Source of the DNA: Octopus sinensis
Lineage: Eukaryota
Direction: 5' to 3'
DNA length: 64,000 nucleotides
NCBI RefSeq assembly: GCF_006345805.1
Contig: NC_043014.1
Span: forward strand, 25,854,001 to 25,918,000
Part shown: positions 85 through 56,264 of the stretch, one piece after another
How the letters are laid out: each line of letters starts with the position of its first letter
Position numbering within the stretch: position 1 is the first letter of the stretch
Program-made: the position numbers and the translations under genes
Notes under the pieces: generated by a model
Database searches by the model: none
Seen by the model: only the letters and a program-made list of their open reading frames with translations
What the model was told of the DNA's origin: nothing

Positions 85-2715
85 CTATTCGTTTATTGGC
101 CACAAGGGCTTACATAAAATTACAATAAAACACATACAACATAAAAGACAAAAACAAGACGATACACAAGTCTATATTTAAGAGATGAGGAATTATGTAC
201 ATTATTTACATTTGGCGGATATTTGTCCTTATCTTATTTGTGGTGTCTGTGTGTTGTCTAAGGTATTTCACTAGGGCTATGTTGTCGGTGTCGATGGCTG
301 TGAGGCTGGTGGTGCTTGTGCTGTTTGTTTATGTCGGTGTTTGAGGTGGTAGTGCTGGTGTTGTTATTGCTGTTGGTTATTGCGTGTGTGTATTGCTGCA
401 GTTGGATATTTCCTCTCCTCTGCGCCTCCCCCTCTTTTATTCCACTGTCTTTTGTTTTCTGTTTTTGGGGGTAACAGTTTGCCACTCCCCCCTTCTCGAC
501 CTCAATGCTCGAACAGTCCAAGTTGTTTTGATTGGAAAGGGGGTTATTCTCTGGCTGCTCCTTTTTTTGGTGGTGTTCATATGTTGTTGTTGTTGGTGGT
601 GGTGGTACTCCGGCTGGCGTTGGTGGTACTCTGGTTGGCGTTGGTGGTACTCCGGCTGGTGTTGGTGGGACTCCGGCTGGTGTTGGTGTTACTCAGGTTG
701 GCGTTGGTGGTACTCCGGCTGGTGTTGGTGGAACTCCAGTTGGTGTTGGTGGTACTCCTGCTGGTGTTGGTGGTACTCTGGCTGGTGTTGGTGGTACTCT
801 GGCTGGTGTTGGTGGTACTCAGGTTGGTGTTGGTGGTACACCGGCTGGTGTTGGTGGTACTCAGGTTGGTGTTGGTGGTACTCCGCTGGTGTTGGTGGTA
901 CTCCAGTTGGTGTTGGTGGTACTCAGGTTGGTGTTGGTGGTACTCCGCTGGTGTTGGTGGTACTCCAGTTGGTGTTGGTGGTACTCCGGCTGGTGTTGGT
1001 GGTACTCAGGTTGGTGTTGGTGGTACTCCAGCTGGTGTTAGTGCTTCTCCAGCTGGTGTTGGTGGTACTCAGGTTGGTGTTGGTGGTACTCCGCTGGTGT
1101 TGGTGGTACTCCAGTTGGTGTTGGTGGTACTCCAGTTGGTGTTGGTGGTACTCCTGCTGGTGTTGGTGGTACTCTGGCTGGTGTTGGTGGTACTCAGGTT
1201 GGTGTTAGTGGTACTCCGCTGGTGTTGATGGTACTCCAGCTGGTGTTGGTGTTGGTGGTACTCCGGCTGGTGTTGGTGGTACTCCAGCTGGTGTTGGTGG
1301 TACTCCTGCTGGTGTTGGTGGTACTCCGGCTGGTGTTGGTGGTACTCCAGCTGGTGTTGGTGGTACTCAGGTTGGTGTTGGTGGTACTCCGGCTGGTGTT
1401 GGTGGTACTCCTGCTGGTGTTGGTGGTACTCAGGTTGGTGTTGGTGGTACTCCAGCTGGTGTTGGTGGTACTCAGGTTGGTGTTGGTGGTACTCCAGCTG
1501 GTGTTGGTGGTACTCCGGCTGGTGTTGGTGGTATTCCGGCTGGTGTTGGTTTTACTTCGGCTGGTGATTTTGGTTGTTCTCTGCTGCTGCACTGGAGCGG
1601 CCCTCGCTTCTGTTGACGCAGCTTTTTTTCATTTCTTTGTATTTGCGGCAGTCGACCTTGAGGTGCTGGTCGTCCCCACAAAAGTAGCACCTTGGACGCC
1701 TGCCCTTCACGACCACGTGCAGTACCGTGTCGTCTGGTAAATTTATGGCGTCAGGGATTGAATTTATGGCTTCTTGTTCAATTTGAACAAGAAGCTCTGA
1801 TCCCTGACCCATCCAGTTTTGTTGATGCAATTTATGTACCACCAGTATATTGGTGATGTCCTCTATATCATAGAGGACAGCTGCAACCAGCCAGCCTACA
1901 TTTACTTCGCGGGGCACCACCCCAATTTTAATTTTCGTCAAGCGCCGACCAAGGTATGTCAACACGAGCAGGAATTCGTCTGTTTGTAGGGGCACAGTGG
2001 AATGCTGTCTTGTTTCCTTCTCTTTAGTAAAACTCACTTCCACCGTGCCGAAGCGCTTTCCTCTTGTCACATAGGTTTTATTGGTCCAAATCACTCTGAC
2101 GGCCATTTCCATCAGTTGTTGGCTGGCTCGTTCTAACCTTTTCTTCTTGATGTTTAAAACTCTCTATATTACTGATTTTCGATCCGTCTCCTTTATTAAT
2201 TCCCGAGGAGTGTTAAGGAAGACATTATTTCCTTCCTTCCTTAACAACTCCTTTCAATTTGTAGTTCATTTTTTGTTAAATTCAACAACTCTTTTGTCTG
2301 CTTTGCTGCCGAGGCGAAACCGTTGCCGCTAGATTTGCTGTTCGTGTTTGTGGTGTTAGTGTCATTGTTTTTTGTTTTTCTTTCTTCCTCCTTCTCTTTT
2401 TCAGGAACATTTTCTTGGTTTTCTGTATTTTCTTTGTTGTTGCTGATGGTGGTGTTGCTGATGGTTGGCATCGCTGCTCGTGGTTGTGCTGTTTAGAGGG
2501 GGGAAATCTTGACTGTACTGGCCGTCAGAACAGCCACTGTCACTCCCCTCAACAAAAGAAGCCATCTTGTTCTTGTTTTTTTGTCAAACGAAAAACTAAT
2601 TTTTTTTTTAAATGGACAAAATTCGCCCTTAAAAGGGGGAAATTTTCAACAGAAAAAAATCCTCCTGCACACTAAAAGGGGTTCGGAAAACAAAAACCAA
2701 CAAACAAACGGTCAA
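85..2715 (-). mobile_element. ORF1-only (HAL1-like) L1/Tx1-derived element, degenerate
   Basis: Gag-like ORF 1552..2112 with CCHC knuckle CYFCGDDQHLKVDC, then a 21-bp repeat and C-terminal tail (258..521). No EN or RT. The 85-170 terminus resembles the Tx1 3' end at 8281-8375. Confidence 0.7.
598..1550. repeat. 21-bp minisatellite (ggtggtactccggctggtgtt)n with 20-bp variants
   Basis: Directly visible, roughly 45 units. Minus-strand frames read PTPAGVP, TTNTSRS or HQHQPEY. Confidence 0.95.
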
Positions 2716-15949: not shown

Positions 15950-16070
15950 ATATATATAAATGTACACACATATACACATACATACACATACCTACAATAT
16001 GTACATACACATAAATATATAGAGACATGTATTCACATGAAGACAAATATATACACCATAACGTATATAC

Positions 16071-17393
16071 CAATACCCAAAAAAGGCGATTTGTCCCTCG
16101 TCACCAACTACAGGGGCATATTTCTAATGTAATTGCTGCAAAACTGTACAACAAACTGATCCTAAATCGTCTTGTCCTTTTTGTTGAACCTTTGCTCCGA
16201 AAGAACCAAAATGGATTCAGACATGGGCGCTCAACGCTGAGCCAGATACTATGCCTGCGCAGACTTATTGAAGAATCAAAAGCATTTAATCGGGATCTTG
16301 CAATGGTATTTGTAGACTTTTCTAAAGCGTTCGATTCTGTAGATAGGTACAAGATGTTTGAAATCCTTAAGCTCTATGGGATACCAGACAAAATTATTTC
16401 TGCCATCAAGGTCCTCTACACAGATACGTCTTCAACCATCTTAACTCCTGATGGAGAAACATCATCTTTCCCAATCAAAGCCGGAATACTGCAGGGAGAC
16501 ACACTCGCCCCATTTCTTTTCATCATTGTTGTTGATTATGTGCTACGTATGTCAGTTGATACCATCCCTGGCAAGGGCTTTGAAATAAAACCAAGAAGAA
16601 GTTCCAGACACCCAGCTGAGTACTTGACAGACACTGACTTTGCTGACGACATCGCTCTTATCAGTGATTCTCTCTCCAATGCCCAGTCTCTTTTACAATC
16701 TCTTGAACAAGCCTCAAATTGTGTAGGTCTTTACCTCAATGAGGCCAAAACTGAATACATAAACACGTGCCTGTCCAACAGTGATTGCATCATCCACACT
16801 CTCAACAGTGCGCCTTTAAATATGGTTTCTGATTATAAATATCTTGGGTCATACATATCATCATCTGGAAAATACTTTCTAACTAGAAAGGGTATGGCCT
16901 GGTCAGCCTGTAATGACATGCATAAGATCTGGTCATCAAATCTAAGTATAGACTTCAAACTTGAAATATTCAAAGCCACAGTCGAACCAATTCTACTATA
17001 TGGCTCAGAAACCTGGACGTTATCAAAGAAGCTTGAGAGGCGGTTGGATGGAACCTACACTCGCCTTCTTATGAGAGCTGAAAATATCCCGTGGAAGCGC
17101 CATCCAACCAAAATGCAAATATATGGGAAATTACCACCTTGTGAAAGGTAGGAGAGTCCAGTTTGCTGGACATTGTTGTAGAGCTGAAAAAGAAGTAATT
17201 TCTACTCTTCTCCTCTGGAAGCCATCTACTCGCAATACCAGAGGGTGCACACTCACCTACCCTGATGTAATATTCAGGGATACAGGCATCCAGCAACAGG
17301 ACATCCGTAATGCCATGATGGACCGTGAAGTCTGGCGTAACATAGTAAATTCCATTGTCTCGACCACGGTCGAACAATGATGATGATGATGAT
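16071..17393 (+). mobile_element. 5'-truncated RTE-clade LINE (RT domain) with (TGA)n tail and 8-bp TSD gtatatac
   Basis: ORF with QNGFR, VDFSKAFDSV, GILQGDTLAPFLF, DFADDIAL, YKYLG. TSD at 16063-16070 and 17394-17401. Frameshifts near 16130 and 17140. Confidence 0.93.
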
Positions 17394-26559: not shown

Positions 26560-27480
26560 CTTTGACCACAGTCTATGGGTCGCTGTTATGTGTTTTGATA
26601 GTGGGCGGATCCAGCACATTGAGGTTGTAGGAAATGACATGTTCAATACCGTGTATGCCCTCCTGGATGTTCAAAATGGCCATACACTGTCGGTACATGG
26701 AGTGCATGACGCGGTTCACAAAAGCCATTGGTATCTGTACCCTCACTCTGAGGAAAGTTGCCTCCACTTCTATACGAGTTGTCGGCCTTGCGACTACCAG
26801 GTTCAGCCGTCCCTGGATTTCATCCTACAGGTGTTCAATTGGGTTCAAATCCGGATTGAGAGCCTGAAGCGGCATGGTTCTAATGTTGTGCTGACGCAGG
26901 AAGTCCGTGGTGACCCTGGCCGTGTGGGAGGGAGCATTGCCCTGCTGGAACACTTGGCAATGGTGACGCGAGATGGGCATGATGTGAGGTCTTAGGATCT
27001 GGTCAACGTAGCGCTGCGCTATGATGTCATTCCTTCTACTTGTAGCAACATTTTGGAACACGTGGGGCCCAATTCTCTGATTCAGGCCTATTACATCCCA
27101 AACCATGATGCTTTGGCCACCCCCCACATCTCTTTTCATGACACATACGTCTGTGTAGCGTTCACCTCTCCTACACCACAGCCTCACTCTGCCATCCGAG
27201 GTGGAAATGCAGTACCGCCTCTCGTCAGAGAAGACTATCGACCTCCATTATTCATATCACCAATGTCCGTGCTGTGTAGCCCACTGTAGTCATGCCTGAT
27301 GGTGGCGGGCAGTGAGGAAGGCCCTCGAACAGGACGAGCAGGACAAGCAGGAGGAGCAGGACGAGCAGGACGAGCAACGCAGGTTGTTGGTGGACAGTCG
27401 ACGTCATACTGTGTCGTCGCAGATGAGTCGCTGTCGAGTGCCAATTGTCTCGCGAGCTGTCACACTGGCCGGTCTGAAGT
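26560..27480 (-). mobile_element. Tc1-family transposase remnant
   Basis: IVFSDE, GGGQSIMVW, FQQGNAPSHTAR and PDLNPIEHL motifs. Frameshifts. TIRs not identified. Confidence 0.85.
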
Positions 27481-30400
27481 GATTTCGGATTTGACCGAAT
27501 AATATGATGTGGATGATCGAGCGTCGGTGGAGATAACTCTGTCACTATTCTCCTTCCAGGAAACTTAACTCTTGTGTCCAAAAATTTCATGCTAGCTTTT
27601 GAAAAACTAGACGTAAATTTTATGTTGGACTTGAAACCATAACAGTCACAGAAATACAAGAAAGCAATTAAACTATCCTGTGATTCCTCCCAGACAAAAA
27701 AGACGTCATTAATGAACCGTAGCTAAAGTATTGGTTCATAACCATGAAAGGATCTGAATGTCTTCAGTAGCTGTGTCTCGAATGTCGTCATGGGAGTACC
27801 CATTGCTGGTAAAATCTTTGTCCAAATTTCATTGTGTTACTTTGTTACACAAATCTCAATAAGCTACAGAGAAAATATGATGGAATACTGTTGTTTGACC
27901 GCTTTTCGAAGGCATCCATGCATGCTTCTAACCCTTCATCCTGGTCAATATTGGGATATAAGGAAGAAACATCCATGGTTACCAAAAAACAGTTCTCGAC
28001 ACAGCCTCGGTGCTTAAAAAAGTTGTTGATTTTAGACACAAAATCAAAGTATCCCGAATATAGGAACTAGATCTTTTTGCTACAAGGAGTAGAAAGTCAT
28101 GCAGCCATTCCGAAATCTTGGCTGTACAGCATTCATATCCGCTGCAAATTGTGGGTGCATTGAAGGAAATCTTTCGAACTTTTTGTGTATTTTAGGGAGA
28201 CCATGAAATACAGGTGTTCTTTCTGAACGTAAAATCCTGGATTCGGCCTTATTAATAAAATTGTTTTCCTTCATTTCCAGAATTATTTTGTGAAGTTCCT
28301 CTCTGTAATTGGAGTTTGGATCGACAGGTAATTCTTCCTATGAAGTTTTATCATTTAAAACTTCACAAGCCGAAATATACTCACTTTTGTCCATATTTAC
28401 GATAGCGCCTTTATCTGCCACTTTAATAATAGAATCGTTATTAGCTAGACGTCGGCGTACGTAACGTTAGGAATTTGTGAGGTTATTCCAGAACTTCTTT
28501 CCAGTTTTGAGGCTTTTTCTAATACCTGTCTGATAAGATTCAAGAAATTCCAGTAGTGCTTGTGAACGTCCATCCCGAACTTTTTCTGGATACCAATTGG
28601 GATTTTTTTCAATCCAATTATGCCAGATTTGATGATCACCATTTTAATTTTCAGTAAGCATAGGGTTTTCTGACTCCTCGTTACCAGTTTTTCCAAAAAA
28701 TATTCCTTCAGCTTGTGACGGCGGACAAACTGAAATAGCTCAAGCTAGTTTATTCTTGTCGAAATTCTTAGTGCTTGAGCAGAAACTCAGTCCAAGCTCC
28801 AAGACTGAGACATCGTCGGGCGAAAGTCTTAGTATAGATAAATTTATGACTGACTTATTCTCTAGTGTGATGGATTTTCTCGGGCAAATGGTTTTCAGAA
28901 GCTTACCATCATTAGATTCCTGACTACTTTTTGGGATTTGCTCGAAATCTTCACTTAAAACACGGAACCTATTGGGTGATAAAATTTGTTCTGAATGTTC
29001 ACGTGAGAAGTTATATTTTTAGTCGTCTTTCTAGGGGTAATCCATTTCTGGGTTGGTGATAGAAAGTGAGTGACTTCTGTGGTTTTTGTAGACATTTGAA
29101 AAACTTTCGGGAAAAAAAAAAAAATTATTGTTTTCGACGCAAAATCTTAAATGTGCTCACCTTTTTGACTGATCGTTTCCAATGACCACTTCAAATACAT
29201 ACGCCAGGGAAAAAGGCCACAATCATATGCGTCAACTCGGGGATTAGTTATATAAAGTTGTTGAACTGCAGGAATAACGGTTGTTTGTGGAGAGTACATT
29301 GTTATTTGTACTATTAGGTCCTGTGAAACTGGTAAGTTCAAAATGTCATAAATATAATCATCTCCGAAAAATTGGTCGACAAAACAAAATGATTGTTCCT
29401 GGTGCGATGAATGAATAGTATGCGATGTCGACTGTATTTTAGAAATTTCGTGTGAGAAAAAATGGTCGATGGTATTGAAATTTCAGGAATATTTTCCGCT
29501 ACAATTTTCAAACCGGCGTCAATATCACTTAATATTTGTCACAAAAGTAAAAATGACTTCTCCTCATATTGCAAAGCAAATGTTCTCAACCAAAATGTTT
29601 CCTTGCCCACTGGCTCAGGGGAATGGGAAATCAGCTTTTTCAGCTACTTTTCTTTTTTTGTCTTCAGGGCCGAAATTTCTTTTTTTTTTCAAAGTTCATC
29701 AAACAGTTATATAAATAATTCAAACGATTGTTAGAACAAACCTTTTCAAAGACACTATTTTAAAAGGATTGACGTAACTCTTCACAAGGACAATTACTGT
29801 CTGCACCAAGCAGTATTAATTTTGAACGATAGTGTTCAATAATAGCTTCCATTACGTTAAATGATTTGATCTCACCAATTAATTTAATCTTTTGAAGCAA
29901 TGAATTGATGCACTCATTGGTATATTGATGTAAGACCGTCCAGTATAACTTTTCGTGTTTGCATGTTTCCAGAAATGATAAATGGCTTTTGATTTCAGCA
30001 CGAAAACGTTTTTCACTGATACGAATGTCGATTTCTCAATTTCTGATTCGTATTTGAACGGTACGAAATCCATTGGCCCAGGACTGGGCTCAACACTGGG
30101 TTCAAGCCAGTTGTAAGAAGGAATAAAACGCAACAGCTGTAATTTACATTACGATTTTCCTTAGACACTGCTTTGATAACTTCCAGAATTTCTATATGTT
30201 CCAATTCTTATTCTGTGTACCATAAAATCAATCATCTCTATCTACTTGATTTTGATATTTTAAAAGGATTGACGTAACTCTTCACAAAGGTAAACAGTCA
30301 AGACAAAAAGCGTGATTAGATTGTAACAGATATTTTATTGGTCAAACGATATTTCGACAGTAAGCCTGCCTTTGTTGAGTTCAAAATAAGTGATAAAAAT

Positions 30401-30646
30401 TCAAAATTATAGAAATTTAAATTTGAAGTATGAACGAGAGAAACCAGCGCCCACACGTTGATGGAATGACATCAGTATTTAAGTTTCACTTTTATAACAG
30501 ACGAAAAGAAAAAAAAAAAACAGAGAAAAGGCAGAAAAATAGAGGAGAGTAAAAAAGAAAGGGAAAAAGAATATTTAATCAAACGGTTTTGTATAAATTT
30601 GATGATATTCCCCTGTCATATTATTCATTCCTCCGGGGCGTTCATA
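27481..30646 (-). mobile_element. Penelope-like element, inverted 5' part: pLTR (~30257-30640), N-terminal region, Ulp1-like domain, RT
   Basis: VINLSILRLSPDDVSVLELGLSF, TPVFHGLPKIHK, VTMDVSSLYPNI and MKFLD RT motifs. Stops and frameshifts. Confidence 0.85.
29100..29560 (-). pseudogene. Ulp1/C48-like cysteine-protease domain remnant inside the Penelope-like ORF
   Basis: Across frameshifts: NNHFVL … IYDILN … VQQ … DCGLF(A)LAYV … AHLRFCVE…FP, giving His-Asp-Gln-Cys in C48 order. Confidence 0.65.
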
Positions 30647-31841
30647 CACATCATATTATTCGGTCAAATCTGAAATCCTAATTTTTGAGGATACAACGGA
30701 TATGTACTGACATAAGGGATTACTGGAAACATGCAAATACTTTTGTACATCATCATGTCAAGTGCGGTTACAGTGAATCACGATTAAAGGAAATAGCAAA
30801 TGAAATAGCTAAGATTAGCAAAGATAGTCAAACCTTCACGCATAATTTTAGCAAATACAATACAATAGATGATAGAATTTCTATAGTGATTAACTGGCAC
30901 CGAAATTTCGCTGGCATTTCAAATGTTGCAATGAAAGCTACCGGCATGTGGCGAAAAAATATCTGCGTTTCAAACAGATTTTTCCTCAGCCGCCTACTGT
31001 AGCCTTTCGACGGAATAAATATATAAGAGATTTATTTCTGACTCCAAGAAAACGAACATTGTAGTATCTGCACGCTGTACCTTGAAAAACAGTCGCAGGA
31101 GAGGTAAGCCTTGTTCATTGTGCAACAACATGAGTCAAGTGGATACCATCAGGAATCATAACAGAAATGTTTATACAGAAGGTAGGACATGAAGAGATTC
31201 CAATTTGGTATACGCAGCAAAATGCACGAAATACAACCTGATTTATGTTGGTTGTATAATAGAACAATTAAACAAAAGATTTGATGGGCACAGATTGGAT
31301 GTCAGGCACAATAACAGTAGTTCCACAGAACTTGATTAACATTTTGCTTCAAACGGCTGCAATTTTGAAAAAGACTTGAAAGTGCATATTCTAAGAAAAT
31401 ATTCTGAATCTGTTTCACTTTCACTTCTCAAAATACACGAGGAGAAATATGTTTGCGGGTTATTAACATCACGCCCTGGAGGAATGAATAACAGGAGAAT
31501 ATCATCAAATTTATACTAAACTCTTTGATTCTTCTGTTTTCTTTTTCTTTTTTCTTTCCTCTTTCTGTCTTTTTTATCTACCTTTTTCTTTTCGCCTTTA
31601 TAAAATTGAAACTTTAAGGCTGATGATGTCATTCCATCAACGTTTGGAGGCTGGTTTCTCTCGTTCATACTTTAAATATAAATTTCAATAATTTTGAATT
31701 TTTATCACTTCTTACTTTGAACTCGACAAAGACAGGCTTACTATCGAAATATCGTTTGACCAATAAAATATCTGTTACAATCGAATCTCGCTCTTCTTCT
31801 TGACTGTTTACTTTTGTGAAGAGTTACATCAAACTTTTTAA

Positions 31842-31844
<3 letters not shown>
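30647..31844 (+). mobile_element. Penelope-like element 3' part: RT thumb, CxxC linker, GIY-YIG endonuclease, pLTR (31472-31844)
   Basis: LRIQRICTD, KPCSLC, NLVYAAKC…LIYVG…KRFDGHR, PGGMN. The pLTR is the reverse complement of 30257-30640. Confidence 0.88.
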
Positions 31845-31899
<55 letters not shown>

Positions 31900-31900
<1 letters not shown>

Positions 31901-33347
31901 CAACAGCAAAGTCTCACTGATATGCAGAATATGGATAGAAAGATCCCTAAAATCTTTACAAGGTACCGAATGCACCATCCAAGATCAGATGTAGACAAGA
32001 TTTATCTCCCACGAAAAATAGGTTGAAGAGACCTGATACAGCTCGAACAATCTTTCAAATCAGCAATAATAGGCCTTCAAACGTACCTTAATACGACAAG
32101 TGATGTTTTCTTACGAACTGCACTGAAACATGAAAATTCCAAGTAAGCTTCAGTCATGATGCTTAGTCAGAAATTAAAAAAAAGTCTCTTGGCCTGTAAG
32201 TTAGCAATAAGAATGACCAAAGACACCCAAATACTGACAGATCTACCATTGCTTCTCTTGATTTAGAAATTAACAATCAGAAAGACAGTCTAGATCCAAA
32301 TAGTGACAAACCTAATATCACTGAGGCTTGCATGAATAATATTGTAGACAACTGGAAAGGTAAACTCCTTCATGGAAAATACCCTAACCGTCTGTCCAAG
32401 CCAGATATTGATCAAAATCTAACACACCAATGGCTGCAAAGGATAGGTCTGAAAGTGGAAACAGAAGGTATTGTTATTGCAGCGCAAGATCAGAGCTTAC
32501 CGACCAGAAACTACCATGCAAACATCTTTAAATATGGATTTAACCCCTAGTGCAGAATTTGCAGAAAATTCAGAGACAATTCCGGCTGCCCAGTGCACGC
32601 TGAAAAGGAGTACCTCATAAGACATAACAGACTAGGGCAGTACATCCACTGGAATGCTTGTAAATACTATAAAATAAAATCAATGTTAAGTGGTACACGC
32701 ACCATCCAGAGGATGTAGTTAATGGCGAGGACGTCACCATCCTTTGGAACTTCCCAATACAGAAAAAATTACAAGACATTATGATCAAGGACTGCAACAG
32801 AGGAACATAATAATAAAAATGATAATAATGCGAATAGGCCAGGCATTATATTGACGGGCTTGAAACAAAAAACATGCCTCCTCATCGATATGACTATTCC
32901 AATCGACATAAATATATGTGTCAAGACCGACCAAAAACTGAGCGAGTATAAAGATCTTGAAATAGAAATTGGCAAAATGTGGAACCTCAAGACTAAAACA
33001 ATACCTGTTGTCATAGGTGCCCTAGGAATAATAGCAAAAAGGCCTGATTCCTACCTAGTTCATATACCAGGAAATCCAAAAATGGCAGAAATTCAAAAAA
33101 TAGTGCCCATATATATCCTACCTAAAATACTGTCTATATAATCTCAAATTTTAAAACAAACCGATAATTTTCTGATGTTTTTTTAAACATTCTCTAGAAC
33201 AATACTTTGTGGAAAACAAAATATATGGCACCCTAGTCATAACATCAAATTGAACTTCTAACTTGTTGTCTCTTGAGGCCTCTGCGTGAGACTTGGAGTC
33301 AGCTTGTACAAATACAAAGCAAAAGTAATAATAACAATAACAATAAC

Positions 33348-54567: not shown

Positions 54568-56264
54568 ACGTTATTTACATTTGACGGATATTTGTCCTCA
54601 TCTTATTTGTTGTTAACACAACGTTTCAGCTGATATACCCTCCAATTATTAATATTATTATTATAATTATTATTAAGATCACTGCCTGGAATCGAACTCG
54701 GAATTAGTAGCCCGCGCTGTTAACCACTACGCCATATGGAGTGAATTTTAGGGCTTATAAATCTAATATTCTCCTATCCTTCCTTAACACCGGTTCCCAT
54801 ACGCTACTCATATCTACACTCGGTCTGTTTAGGAGGTCGTTGTGCCCTAGTATATGTACTGCTTCTTTTAGTTTTCGTATTTTCCAGTGGTGTTCACTGC
54901 CTATTAACTTAACTTCATCCCACAGGGGGAGGTGGTCTCCATTTTTCCATATAAGATCAGCTATATCGGATATCAATATCTCCTGGTGTCACAGCTTTGC
55001 GATGCTCGTCCACCCTTATTTTGAGGGGGCGGCATGTTTCGCCTTTGTATATCCTACCACAACTGCATGGGATGGAGTACACGCAGTCTTTGGTCATATT
55101 CTCTTCTATTGGTGGTTTTACTCGAAAGAGATATTTTCGAAGCGTTGTATTAATCTTGAATACTGTCCTGATGTCATATGGGCCGCATATCTTTTGTACC
55201 TTTTCGGAGAGTCCTTTCACATAGGGTAGACAGACTATGGACAATTTATTGGTTTCGTCTTCTCTTTTTTTCATAATTGGAGTGGATTGTATGCTTTTGG
55301 GGTAGTTGTTGCTTAATAGATTATTATTGAGCTTGACCATTTCTTCGTGGTGGGTATTACGATCGCTACTTATATTCATTGCTCGATGTTTTAGGAACTG
55401 AGCAATCTCTTTCTTTACACTGTATCGATGGAAGTTTAGGTATCGTCCAGTGAATGTCGGCTTGCGGTATACGGATGTCCTGAATCCATACTTGGTGCGT
55501 GTTATTAATACGTCCAGGAATGTTAGCTGATTGTCTTTTTCCTTTTGCATTGTGAACTGTATAGATGGCTTTATTGAGTTCACATAATCTAACAGCGCTT
55601 GGATATCTTCCTGGTGGGGGCCAGAGTATAAAGGTGTCATCAACATATCGCAGCCGTAGTGTTGATCCTAAAGCCAAATTCTCAAAGTATTCCATGTACA
55701 TATTGGCTATTATCGGTGATAATGGCGAACTCATCGCTAAACCCTCCTCTTTTCAATATATATCAGTATCCATACTGAAGTAGGTAGTTTCTACACAGCA
55801 GGTCAATATTTCCATCAAGTTTCTTATTGGCATACTTGTGTGTTCTTTTAGATGGGTGTCTGTCATTAGTTTTTCTTGAATCACCGATAGTGCTTCACCA
55901 GTTGGGACTTTGGGGAACAGACTTATCACATCTAGACTCACCATCTGGTTGGATTCAGTGGGGGTGTCCTTGATCAATTCTGTGAAGTGGGTGGAATTCT
56001 TCACGTACAATGTTGACTTACCTGCTAATGGACTGATTATATCCACAAGAAAGTGGCTCAGTGGATGACATGCTGAACCTCTACAACTCACTATAGGTCT
56101 TAATGGAATACCATCCTTGTGAATCTTATGGAGACCGTACATGCATGGTAGTTTACTGTAGTGTTGAGTCAGGTGTCTGTACTTCATTGTGACATATGGG
56201 GTAGTTGTTAAGAGCGCGAGCTACTAAATCCAAGATTCCGAATTCGATTCCAAACAGTGACCTG

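Follow-up and report, generated by a model that had tools for sequence, protein, structure and literature searches.

We describe a Penelope-like element (PLE) in the genome of Octopus sinensis which belongs to a lineage whose single open reading frame (ORF) very probably encodes a cysteine protease domain of the CE clan, related to Ulp1 and the C48 peptidases, upstream of the reverse transcriptase (RT). The element occupies positions 27481–31845 of a stretch of 64,000 nucleotides (contig NC_043014.1, positions 25,854,001 to 25,918,000 of the forward strand), which is referred to here as the window, and it is a single old and dead insertion. PLEs are usually described as minimal elements consisting of an RT and a GIY-YIG nuclease. 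In the present lineage the ORF can be read with high confidence as a leader (about 60 residues), a 2A-like motif, a helical region (about 140 residues), a CE-clan protease (about 190 residues), a linker, a PLE-type RT and a GIY-YIG endonuclease. An earlier note on this DNA had proposed that a Ulp1/C48-like cysteine protease precedes the RT of a PLE and belongs to the element itself, and this central claim is borne out by intact ORFs, profile matches, fold and collinearity.

Protease domain in the window and in intact relatives

The protease domain of the window copy is a pseudogene on the minus strand (29100–29643), assigned from a family profile and alignment together with the fold and Pfam matches of intact homologues. 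It comprises approximately 180 residues, which are read in three frames of the minus-strand translation from a start near 29643. An early segment, FWLRTFALQY (29595–29566), is followed by NNHFVL (29397–29380, with the catalytic His at 29391–29389), IYDILN (29353–29336, with the Asp at 29347–29345), AVQQLYI (29269–29249), DCGLF (29224–29210, with the Cys at 29221–29219), LAYVFEVV (29207–29184), AHLRFCVE (29156–29133) and FFFPESF (29120–29100). The catalytic His, Asp and Cys are retained in this copy; the oxyanion Gln has become an Arg (29239–29237). The reading frame is further damaged by two frameshifts (one near 29350, the other near 29213), by in-frame stops at 29541–29539 and 29159–29157 and by a deletion of seven residues. 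The peptides quoted in the earlier note all lie on the minus strand where it had placed them, but the span that it flagged (29100–29560) is too short, as the domain begins near 29643. The order of catalytic residues was also given correctly as His-Asp-(Gln)-Cys, although the Gln was sought in the wrong motif: 'VQQ' contains another conserved Gln, which lies about 15 residues upstream of the Gln in Q-x-G-x-x-D-C.

The six-frame pieces of the window, 3180 in all, were compared with a profile built from intact database homologues alone. The profile matched 29482–29150 with E = 6.6e-13 and 29538–29341 with E = 4.2e-9, the two matches being collinear, and no score better than E = 0.38 was found elsewhere among these pieces. 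The domain in the window is far beyond chance.

A stitched query consisting of the protease segment and the RT retrieved seven database proteins (P0001–P0007) with an intact homologous segment, in which the motifs read HHNGxxHFV...IYDSLN...LYSPD...QxGxxDCGLFAIAYA...DQSKMRxHLxxC...FPK. In an exhaustive search with a profile, 8626 cluster representatives were obtained at E ≤ 1e-3, 180 of them at E ≤ 1e-30, and in the long top matches the domain is found at approximately residues 200–400, followed by RVT_1 and/or GIY-YIG. Pfam assigns both RVT_1 and GIY-YIG to P0002, P0015, P0021 and P0025 and GIY-YIG to P0003, P0014 and P0026; the homologues also carry precomputed DUF8422 and HTH_animal matches. 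When the motifs of 13 long PLE-type proteins were mapped, their order was constant: NPGP, the protease-like domain, LELGL.F, (A)DKG, YxDD and GIY...YIG. At least 12 representatives, mutually less than 50% identical, have their domains in this same order within a continuous ORF. Copies with a continuous ORF, which the earlier note had suggested should be sought, thus do exist with the protease-like domain, RT and GIY-YIG together (P0003, P0014, P0015, P0021, P0025, P0026 and others); that of P0003 is an uninterrupted ORF of 1111 codons on contig L001. Dozens of the 50%-identity clusters retrieved belong to the protease-bearing lineage. It includes young, multicopy families, as is indicated by the cluster of P0004 at 90% identity, whose 31 members are distributed over many contigs of Mb scale.

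The window element is collinear with these intact ORFs from the start codon through to the endonuclease, which excludes both a nested insertion and a chimera of gene models. The reconstruction put forward in the earlier note, in which the reverse complement of 27481–30646 is joined to 30678–31844, is likewise collinear with the intact homologues. The protease domain is an integral and vertically inherited part of the lineage ORF. The window element itself has the attributes of an endonuclease-positive PLE, namely an RT with a C-terminal GIY-YIG domain, the PLE N-terminal and DKG motifs and a pseudo-LTR/inverted structure (LTR, long terminal repeat).

The region upstream of the protease, described in the earlier note as a Penelope-type N-terminal region, is indeed present, but it is made up of a lineage-specific leader, a 2A motif and a helical module. 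NPGP occurs at one alignment position, near residue 60, in all 18 of the fetched relatives which keep the N-terminus (P0001, P0012–P0016, P0019, P0021, P0024–P0028, P0030, P0031, P0061, P0068 and P0146). In 14 of the 18 the motif reads DP[SG][IV]ExNPGP, which fits the 2A ribosome-skipping consensus D(V/I)ExNPGP, and we regard it as a putative ribosome-skipping peptide. It is preceded by a conserved leader, M-DDLxxYRxRIGxF, and by a hydrophobic stretch of about 20 residues. In the window the ORF starts with the ATG at 30235–30233 on the minus strand and the leader reads MIDFMVHRIRIGTY (30194–30235; family consensus M-(D/I)DLxxYRxRIGxF). The 2A-like motif, again following a hydrophobic stretch, has decayed to LEPSVEPSPGP (minus strand, 30074–30106). 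The helical N-terminal region (MDFVPFKYE ... MEAIIEHY ...; minus strand, 29650–30073) aligns with the post-2A region of the relatives and is interrupted by stops and frameshifts. An AlphaFold model of the region between the 2A motif and the protease of P0001 contains three long helices, with a predicted local distance difference test score (pLDDT) of 91.3, and a fold search of the PDB with this region gave nothing better than E = 1.3. Between the protease and the RT lies a linker which is of low complexity apart from the motif kW..P(K/R)K...(about 15 residues)...NRFxxL, which is conserved in all of the aligned relatives; the window has QKWITPRK...NKFYHP at this position (minus strand, 28973–29050).

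Fold and origin of the protease domain

The catalytic residues are close to invariant in approximately 150 representatives, with conservation of 99% for the His, 96% for the Asp, 100% for the Gln six residues before the Cys and 97% for the Cys. An AlphaFold model of the P0003 domain (pLDDT 81.3, predicted template-modelling score 0.80) was compared with the PDB using Foldseek, and all of the top 50 matches belong to the CE clan. SENP5 (3e-6) and Ulp1 (3e-5) rank highest, followed by SENP2, SENP7 and SENP1, NEDP1, OtDUB, adenain (1e-3), XopD and pS273R (7e-3). With the Ulp1/SENP proteins and NEDP1 (PDB entries 1euv, 9gnx, 2io0, 2iyc and 2bkq) the domain shares its fold, the His-Asp-Gln-Cys order and the Q..DCGxF motif; the family-specific C-terminal helix motif sets it apart from them. 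When the PLE-borne domains were scanned in isolation, 22 of the 27 matched Pfam Peptidase_C48 (PF02902) at E ≤ 1, the best at 2.8e-7. One of them, P0168, exceeds the Pfam gathering score (24.1 against 20.7 bits), and in two loci it immediately precedes pieces of a PLE RT. When the 27 PLE-borne domains were combined into a profile, this matched SENP1 (5e-4), SENP2 (8.5e-4) and a fungal Ulp1-like protease (2e-3) in the PDB. In this comparison Q..DCGxF aligns onto the catalytic Cys region of SENP1, and the position following the catalytic His is still aromatic (H-F/W/Y).

Matches among the viral structures in BFVD are also Ulp1-like proteins. We note that the best structural match overall, above any solved SENP, is an unnamed viral protein of 410 residues in this database (Q6R2R7; E = 5.5e-12, TM-score 0.76, 26% identity) and that Phaeovirus (Feldmannia) proteins rank next after it. 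OTU-type proteases have reportedly been noted in some Poseidon families; an OTU-type protease is ruled out here by the CE-clan catalytic order and fold.

The closest non-PLE relatives of the domain are Ulp1-PHD modules, some of which are preceded by a SWIM finger as in Mutator-like proteins. PLE-type sequences score 156–322 bits against the profile, and the next-best sequences are Ulp1-PHD proteins with 93–150 bits, many of which pass the Pfam C48 threshold. Several of these also have a SWIM finger, which suggests that they represent the C-terminal part of Mutator-like transposases. SWIM-Ulp1-PHD or Ulp1-PHD proteins, some of them Mutator-like, include P0127, P0142, P0149, P0105, P0137, P0139, P0203, P0213 and P0221. 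In a neighbour-joining tree, 29 of the 31 PLE-tagged domains fall in one cluster that is free of any PHD-tagged sequence, and the mean identity among PLE-borne domains is 42%. From these sequence relationships, a single capture followed by diversification would be consistent with the data.

Two further associations of the domain were observed. In P0081 it is joined to a YqaJ/alkaline-exonuclease domain. Six amphioxus proteins (Branchiostoma gene models P0084, P0086, P0109, P0141, P0151 and P0164) are polycystin-like, with PLAT and PKD_channel domains, and end in a C-terminal Ulp1-like domain with a PHD-like finger; these are either genuine fusions in the host or gene models that read through into a piece of a transposon.

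Window copy and neighbouring sequences

The RT of the window copy is divided between the two strands. Its N-terminal two thirds are on the minus strand (27481–28943) and end at an inversion breakpoint; tblastn with P0002, P0003 and P0014 is collinear over 28943–27481, with E values down to 9e-66. The motifs SVINLS/LELGLSF (28853–28782), VADKGA (the DKG motif; 28421–28404) and FHGLPKIHK (28208–28182) are recognizable, and the active-site motif has decayed to RFINDVFF (27719–27696). The remainder of the ORF is in the opposite orientation (plus strand, 30639–31489) and covers the RT C-terminal region and the GIY-YIG endonuclease, corresponding in tblastn to residues 818–1092 of P0003 and 1047–1343 of P0014. 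Remnants of the GIY-YIG domain on the plus strand are LVYAAKC (31205–31225), NLIYVG (31235–31252) and KRFDGHR (31274–31294). The 3' tail of the element, its 3' untranslated region (plus strand, 31471–31845), is directly followed by an (AAT)n microsatellite. An upstream tail copy, or pseudo-LTR, of the same sequence lies inverted on the minus strand (30256–30641). The two copies (30641–30256 and 31471–31845) are 83% identical over 393 columns, and the ORF start codon is 20 bp past the upstream copy.

The minus-strand piece of the ORF (30235–27481) reaches residue 829 of P0003, and the plus-strand piece resumes at 30639 with residue 818. There is an overlap of 39 bp of RT-coding sequence at both ends of the inverted segment, where 27519–27481 equals 30639–30677 with 92% identity. 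In the inverted 5' part the 3'-most end is directed towards the flank, and the 5' end adjoins the direct 3' part. Because the tblastn map is collinear and the 39-bp overlap is present, we infer that this head-to-head layout may be the product of a twin-priming-type inversion during insertion by target-primed reverse transcription. The twin priming that Ostertag and Kazazian reportedly described for L1 in 2001 gives such a pattern. Inverted structures are typical of PLE insertions (PMC8557442), and a head-to-head PLE pair is found in the relative locus L002. The window copy is dead, since NPGP has become SPGP, the oxyanion Gln an Arg and the YxDD of the RT INDV, and since it contains many stops.

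We also note a 32-bp direct repeat within the element. A block in the N-terminal coding region (29756–29787, minus strand) is 100% identical to the tail end at 30256–30287, and the other tail copy differs at three positions. No counterpart of this repeat was found in relatives L001–L004.

The window is a stretch rich in transposons and microsatellites. A second, unrelated PLE is located at 54957–56199 (minus strand) and has an RT and a GIY-YIG domain with CVYSIPCSCGRIYKGET. A Tc1/mariner-type transposase remnant (…NAPSHTA…NPDLNPIEHL; 26825–27187, minus strand) is separated from the element's left breakpoint by about 300 bp, and a non-LTR-type RT ORF of 374 codons is found at 16027–17151 (plus strand). 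Long ORFs made of repeats in overlapping frames at 380–1740 (plus strand) look like a minisatellite and not a gene.

Relation to known elements and possible function

The lineage shares with the canonical endonuclease-positive PLEs (Penelope/Poseidon, Neptune and Nematis; Craig et al., 2021, PMC8557442) a pseudo-LTR tail copy, inverted or tandem insertions and a microsatellite 3' end. The CX2-5CxxC linker, which is not found in Penelope/Poseidon, is likewise absent from most members of the lineage; a Cys-rich linker is present in P0003 and in the window copy. What sets the lineage apart from the canonical PLEs is a leader, a 2A-like motif, a helical region and a Ulp1-like protease, which together add approximately 400 residues at the N-terminus. 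Rfam detected none of the hammerhead ribozymes that characterize the tails of canonical PLEs in the loci searched. In the most detailed recent survey of PLEs, the sole added protease is a weak Josephin-like cysteine protease motif in one Chlamys family, Chlamys-1_cBra (PMC8557442). No other PLE with a cysteine protease motif of the deubiquitinase type was found in the literature searched; the Josephin motif of this element is of a different fold and clan and is C-terminal, in a green-lineage PLE with an N-terminal endonuclease.

In architecture, the lineage can be likened to the nematode long interspersed nuclear elements (LINEs) with a restriction-like endonuclease, which also use target-primed reverse transcription and have a Ulp1-like C48 domain N-terminal to the RT in the same ORF. 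These differ in belonging to another retroelement class from the GIY-YIG PLEs and in having no reported 2A motif. Ulp1-like domains have been described in NeSL and Utopia (PMC4640811) and in Polinton (PMC10175614), C48 in CryptonF/S (PMC3212892), and Ulp1 and Ulp1-PHD modules in Ginger1 and Mutator proteins of hydra, lancelet and plants (PMC2836005). In Ginger1 and Mutator, Ulp1 is a C-terminal module of the transposase with a PHD finger, whereas the PLE version is N-terminal, has no PHD finger and has a C-terminal extension of its own (DQxxMRxHLxxC...FPK). 2A-like sequences of the form D(V/I)ExNPGP are found near the ORF N-terminus in non-LTR retrotransposons of the apurinic/apyrimidinic endonuclease (APE) type (Odon et al., 2013, PMC3708506), a study with no mention of Penelope, Poseidon, Neptune or GIY-YIG. 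Unlike in those elements, the PLE 2A motif lies between a hydrophobic leader and a protease. No paper in the literature searched, to which repeat-database entries (Repbase) did not belong, joins PLEs with Ulp1/C48, a SUMO protease, another peptidase or NPGP. A PLE lineage with two accessory modules is widespread and apparently undescribed.

The explanation that we favour, to which we assign a probability of roughly 0.6 for architecture and role taken together, is as follows. The 2A motif would release the leader during translation, and the remaining protein would hold an active isopeptidase together with the RT and the endonuclease. The protease would act in trans, removing SUMO or another ubiquitin-like modifier at the site of target-primed reverse transcription either from host factors that act in chromatin, repair or silencing or from the protein of the element itself, and this removal would favour integration or escape from SUMO-dependent repression. 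Such repression of transposons is known in animals, where it involves Su(var)2-10/PIAS in the PIWI-interacting RNA pathway and SUMOylated KAP1-SETDB1. Control of DNA repair by SUMO and ubiquitin is likewise established and has been discussed for Ginger1 (PMC2836005), and both processes would offer plausible targets. We favour a role in trans because the best structural matches are SUMO/NEDD8 proteases (SENP/Ulp1/NEDP1) and not viral processing proteases, because the nearest relatives are SWIM-Ulp1-PHD or Ulp1-PHD proteins and not polyproteins (PMC2836005), and because separation of the N-terminus would already be provided by 2A and not by proteolysis. Taken by itself, the trans-acting deSUMOylase role is a tentative proposal to which we give somewhat less than even odds. 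The broader statement that a large PLE lineage in eukaryotic, presumably animal, genomes encodes an active deSUMOylase which counters silencing or promotes integration, with 2A and the hydrophobic leader giving two products or destinations, is more doubtful still.

A number of results weigh against this explanation. The window peptide (stitched segments of 138 and 182 residues and the largest single frame) gave no relevant Pfam match, its only match in a PDB sequence search was the unrelated BCAR1 (E = 0.62), with nothing related to C48, and a word-indexed protein search with the stitched protease segment alone returned no match. The C48 match anticipated in the earlier note is obtained for the isolated PLE-borne domains described above but not for the window copy alone. 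Whole PLE proteins gave no C48 match at E ≤ 1 or, in a second set, at E ≤ 0.01, and domain-only scans or profiles are needed; the architecture has probably gone unannotated because whole-protein scans miss the domain. The TM-scores to SENP/Ulp1 structures are moderate (0.52–0.61) at 14–20% identity, and the Trp of the SENP1 'NWLND' motif faces a non-aromatic consensus residue in the PLE-borne profile. This residue (Trp465) presumably helps to clamp the Gly-Gly tail of the substrate, and as it is not conserved the substrate specificity may differ from SUMO. No Rfam hammerhead family was found at E ≤ 1 in 27000–32200 of the window, where the copy is decayed, or at E ≤ 0.01 in the related loci L001–L005, although minimal PLE hammerheads may escape the Rfam models. 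A further point on this side is the conserved Gly-Gly sequence considered next.

The main rival, which we consider rather unlikely, is that the protease acts in cis and cuts the element's long protein, for example to free the GIY-YIG domain from the RT. Cleavage of viral polyproteins after Gly-Gly is known for adenovirus protease, African swine fever virus (ASFV) pS273R and poxvirus I7, the same cis role has been proposed for the N-terminal protease of NeSL-1, and viral processing proteases of the CE clan are present among our structural matches, although SENP and Ulp1 rank above adenain and pS273R in the fold search. A conserved [I/V/A]-x-G-G-x is found 8–10 residues before GIY in 9 of the 11 protease-bearing ORFs (P0002, P0014, P0015, P0021, P0025, P0027, P0028, P0051 and P0068). 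Outside ADKGG and the active-site region, no other Gly-Gly is conserved throughout the ORF. This sequence is lacking in the PLEs P0008–P0010, which have no protease, and in the second PLE of the window, and it resembles a CE-clan cleavage site, fitting the adenain-type consensus (M/I/L)xGG|x. However, in this small sample of 11 ORFs both P0003 and P0026 have an intact protease without the Gly-Gly, no conserved Gly-Gly is found beside the protease itself, and the nearest relatives of the domain lie in single-function transposase proteins.

It is improbable, in our view, that the CE-clan fold serves a purpose other than SUMO-type deconjugation, as a deubiquitinase, a deNEDDylase, a YopJ-like acetyltransferase or a non-catalytic modifier-binding module. 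Acetyltransferases and bacterial deubiquitinases (OtDUB, ChlaDub1 and SseL) do belong to the clan, as does NEDP1; the fold matches include NEDP1 and OtDUB, and the substitution of the SENP1 clamp Trp would agree with another specificity. Weak sub-threshold Pfam matches to the YopJ family Acetyltransf_14 were obtained for three of the 27 isolated domains and several further proteins, but Peptidase_C48 outscores Acetyltransf_14 in every protein scanned and there is no YopJ-family structure in the top 50 fold matches. The near-total conservation of the His, Asp, Gln and Cys speaks against a non-catalytic module. We attach a negligible probability to the view that the protease segment derives from another transposon, such as Mutator or Ginger, as a nested or chimeric fragment within a standard Penelope, or that it is a chance motif match. 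Ulp1 domains are common in DNA transposons (PMC2836005), and the window copy is heavily decayed, lacks a Pfam match as a single copy and has the odd 32-bp repeat nearby. These alternatives are ruled out by the profile E values in the window (1e-9 to 1e-13), by the constant domain order in continuous ORFs of divergent representatives and by collinearity from the start codon to the endonuclease; the clustering of PLE-borne domains apart from PHD-linked ones also counts against them.

The window holds a relic alone, and its interest lies in the lineage that it reveals. In addition to the RT and nuclease, a whole PLE lineage has two further devices, one a putative recoding signal of the 2A type and the other a Ulp1-like protease that is conserved and apparently active. 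N-terminal regions of this kind are probably unannotated or mis-annotated in many invertebrate genomes, because Pfam C48 misses the domain in whole-protein scans. PLEs would join NeSL, Utopia, Mutator, Ginger1, Crypton and Polinton among the transposon classes that have independently recruited SUMO/ubiquitin-type proteases, and this lends weight to the view that mobile elements in general need to control ubiquitin-like modification. With one ORF and one catalytic Cys, the lineage offers a compact system bearing on the counteraction of silencing, the repair of integration sites or self-processing. If the role in trans that we favour is true, it would constitute a retrotransposon-encoded counter-defence against SUMO-dependent transposon repression.

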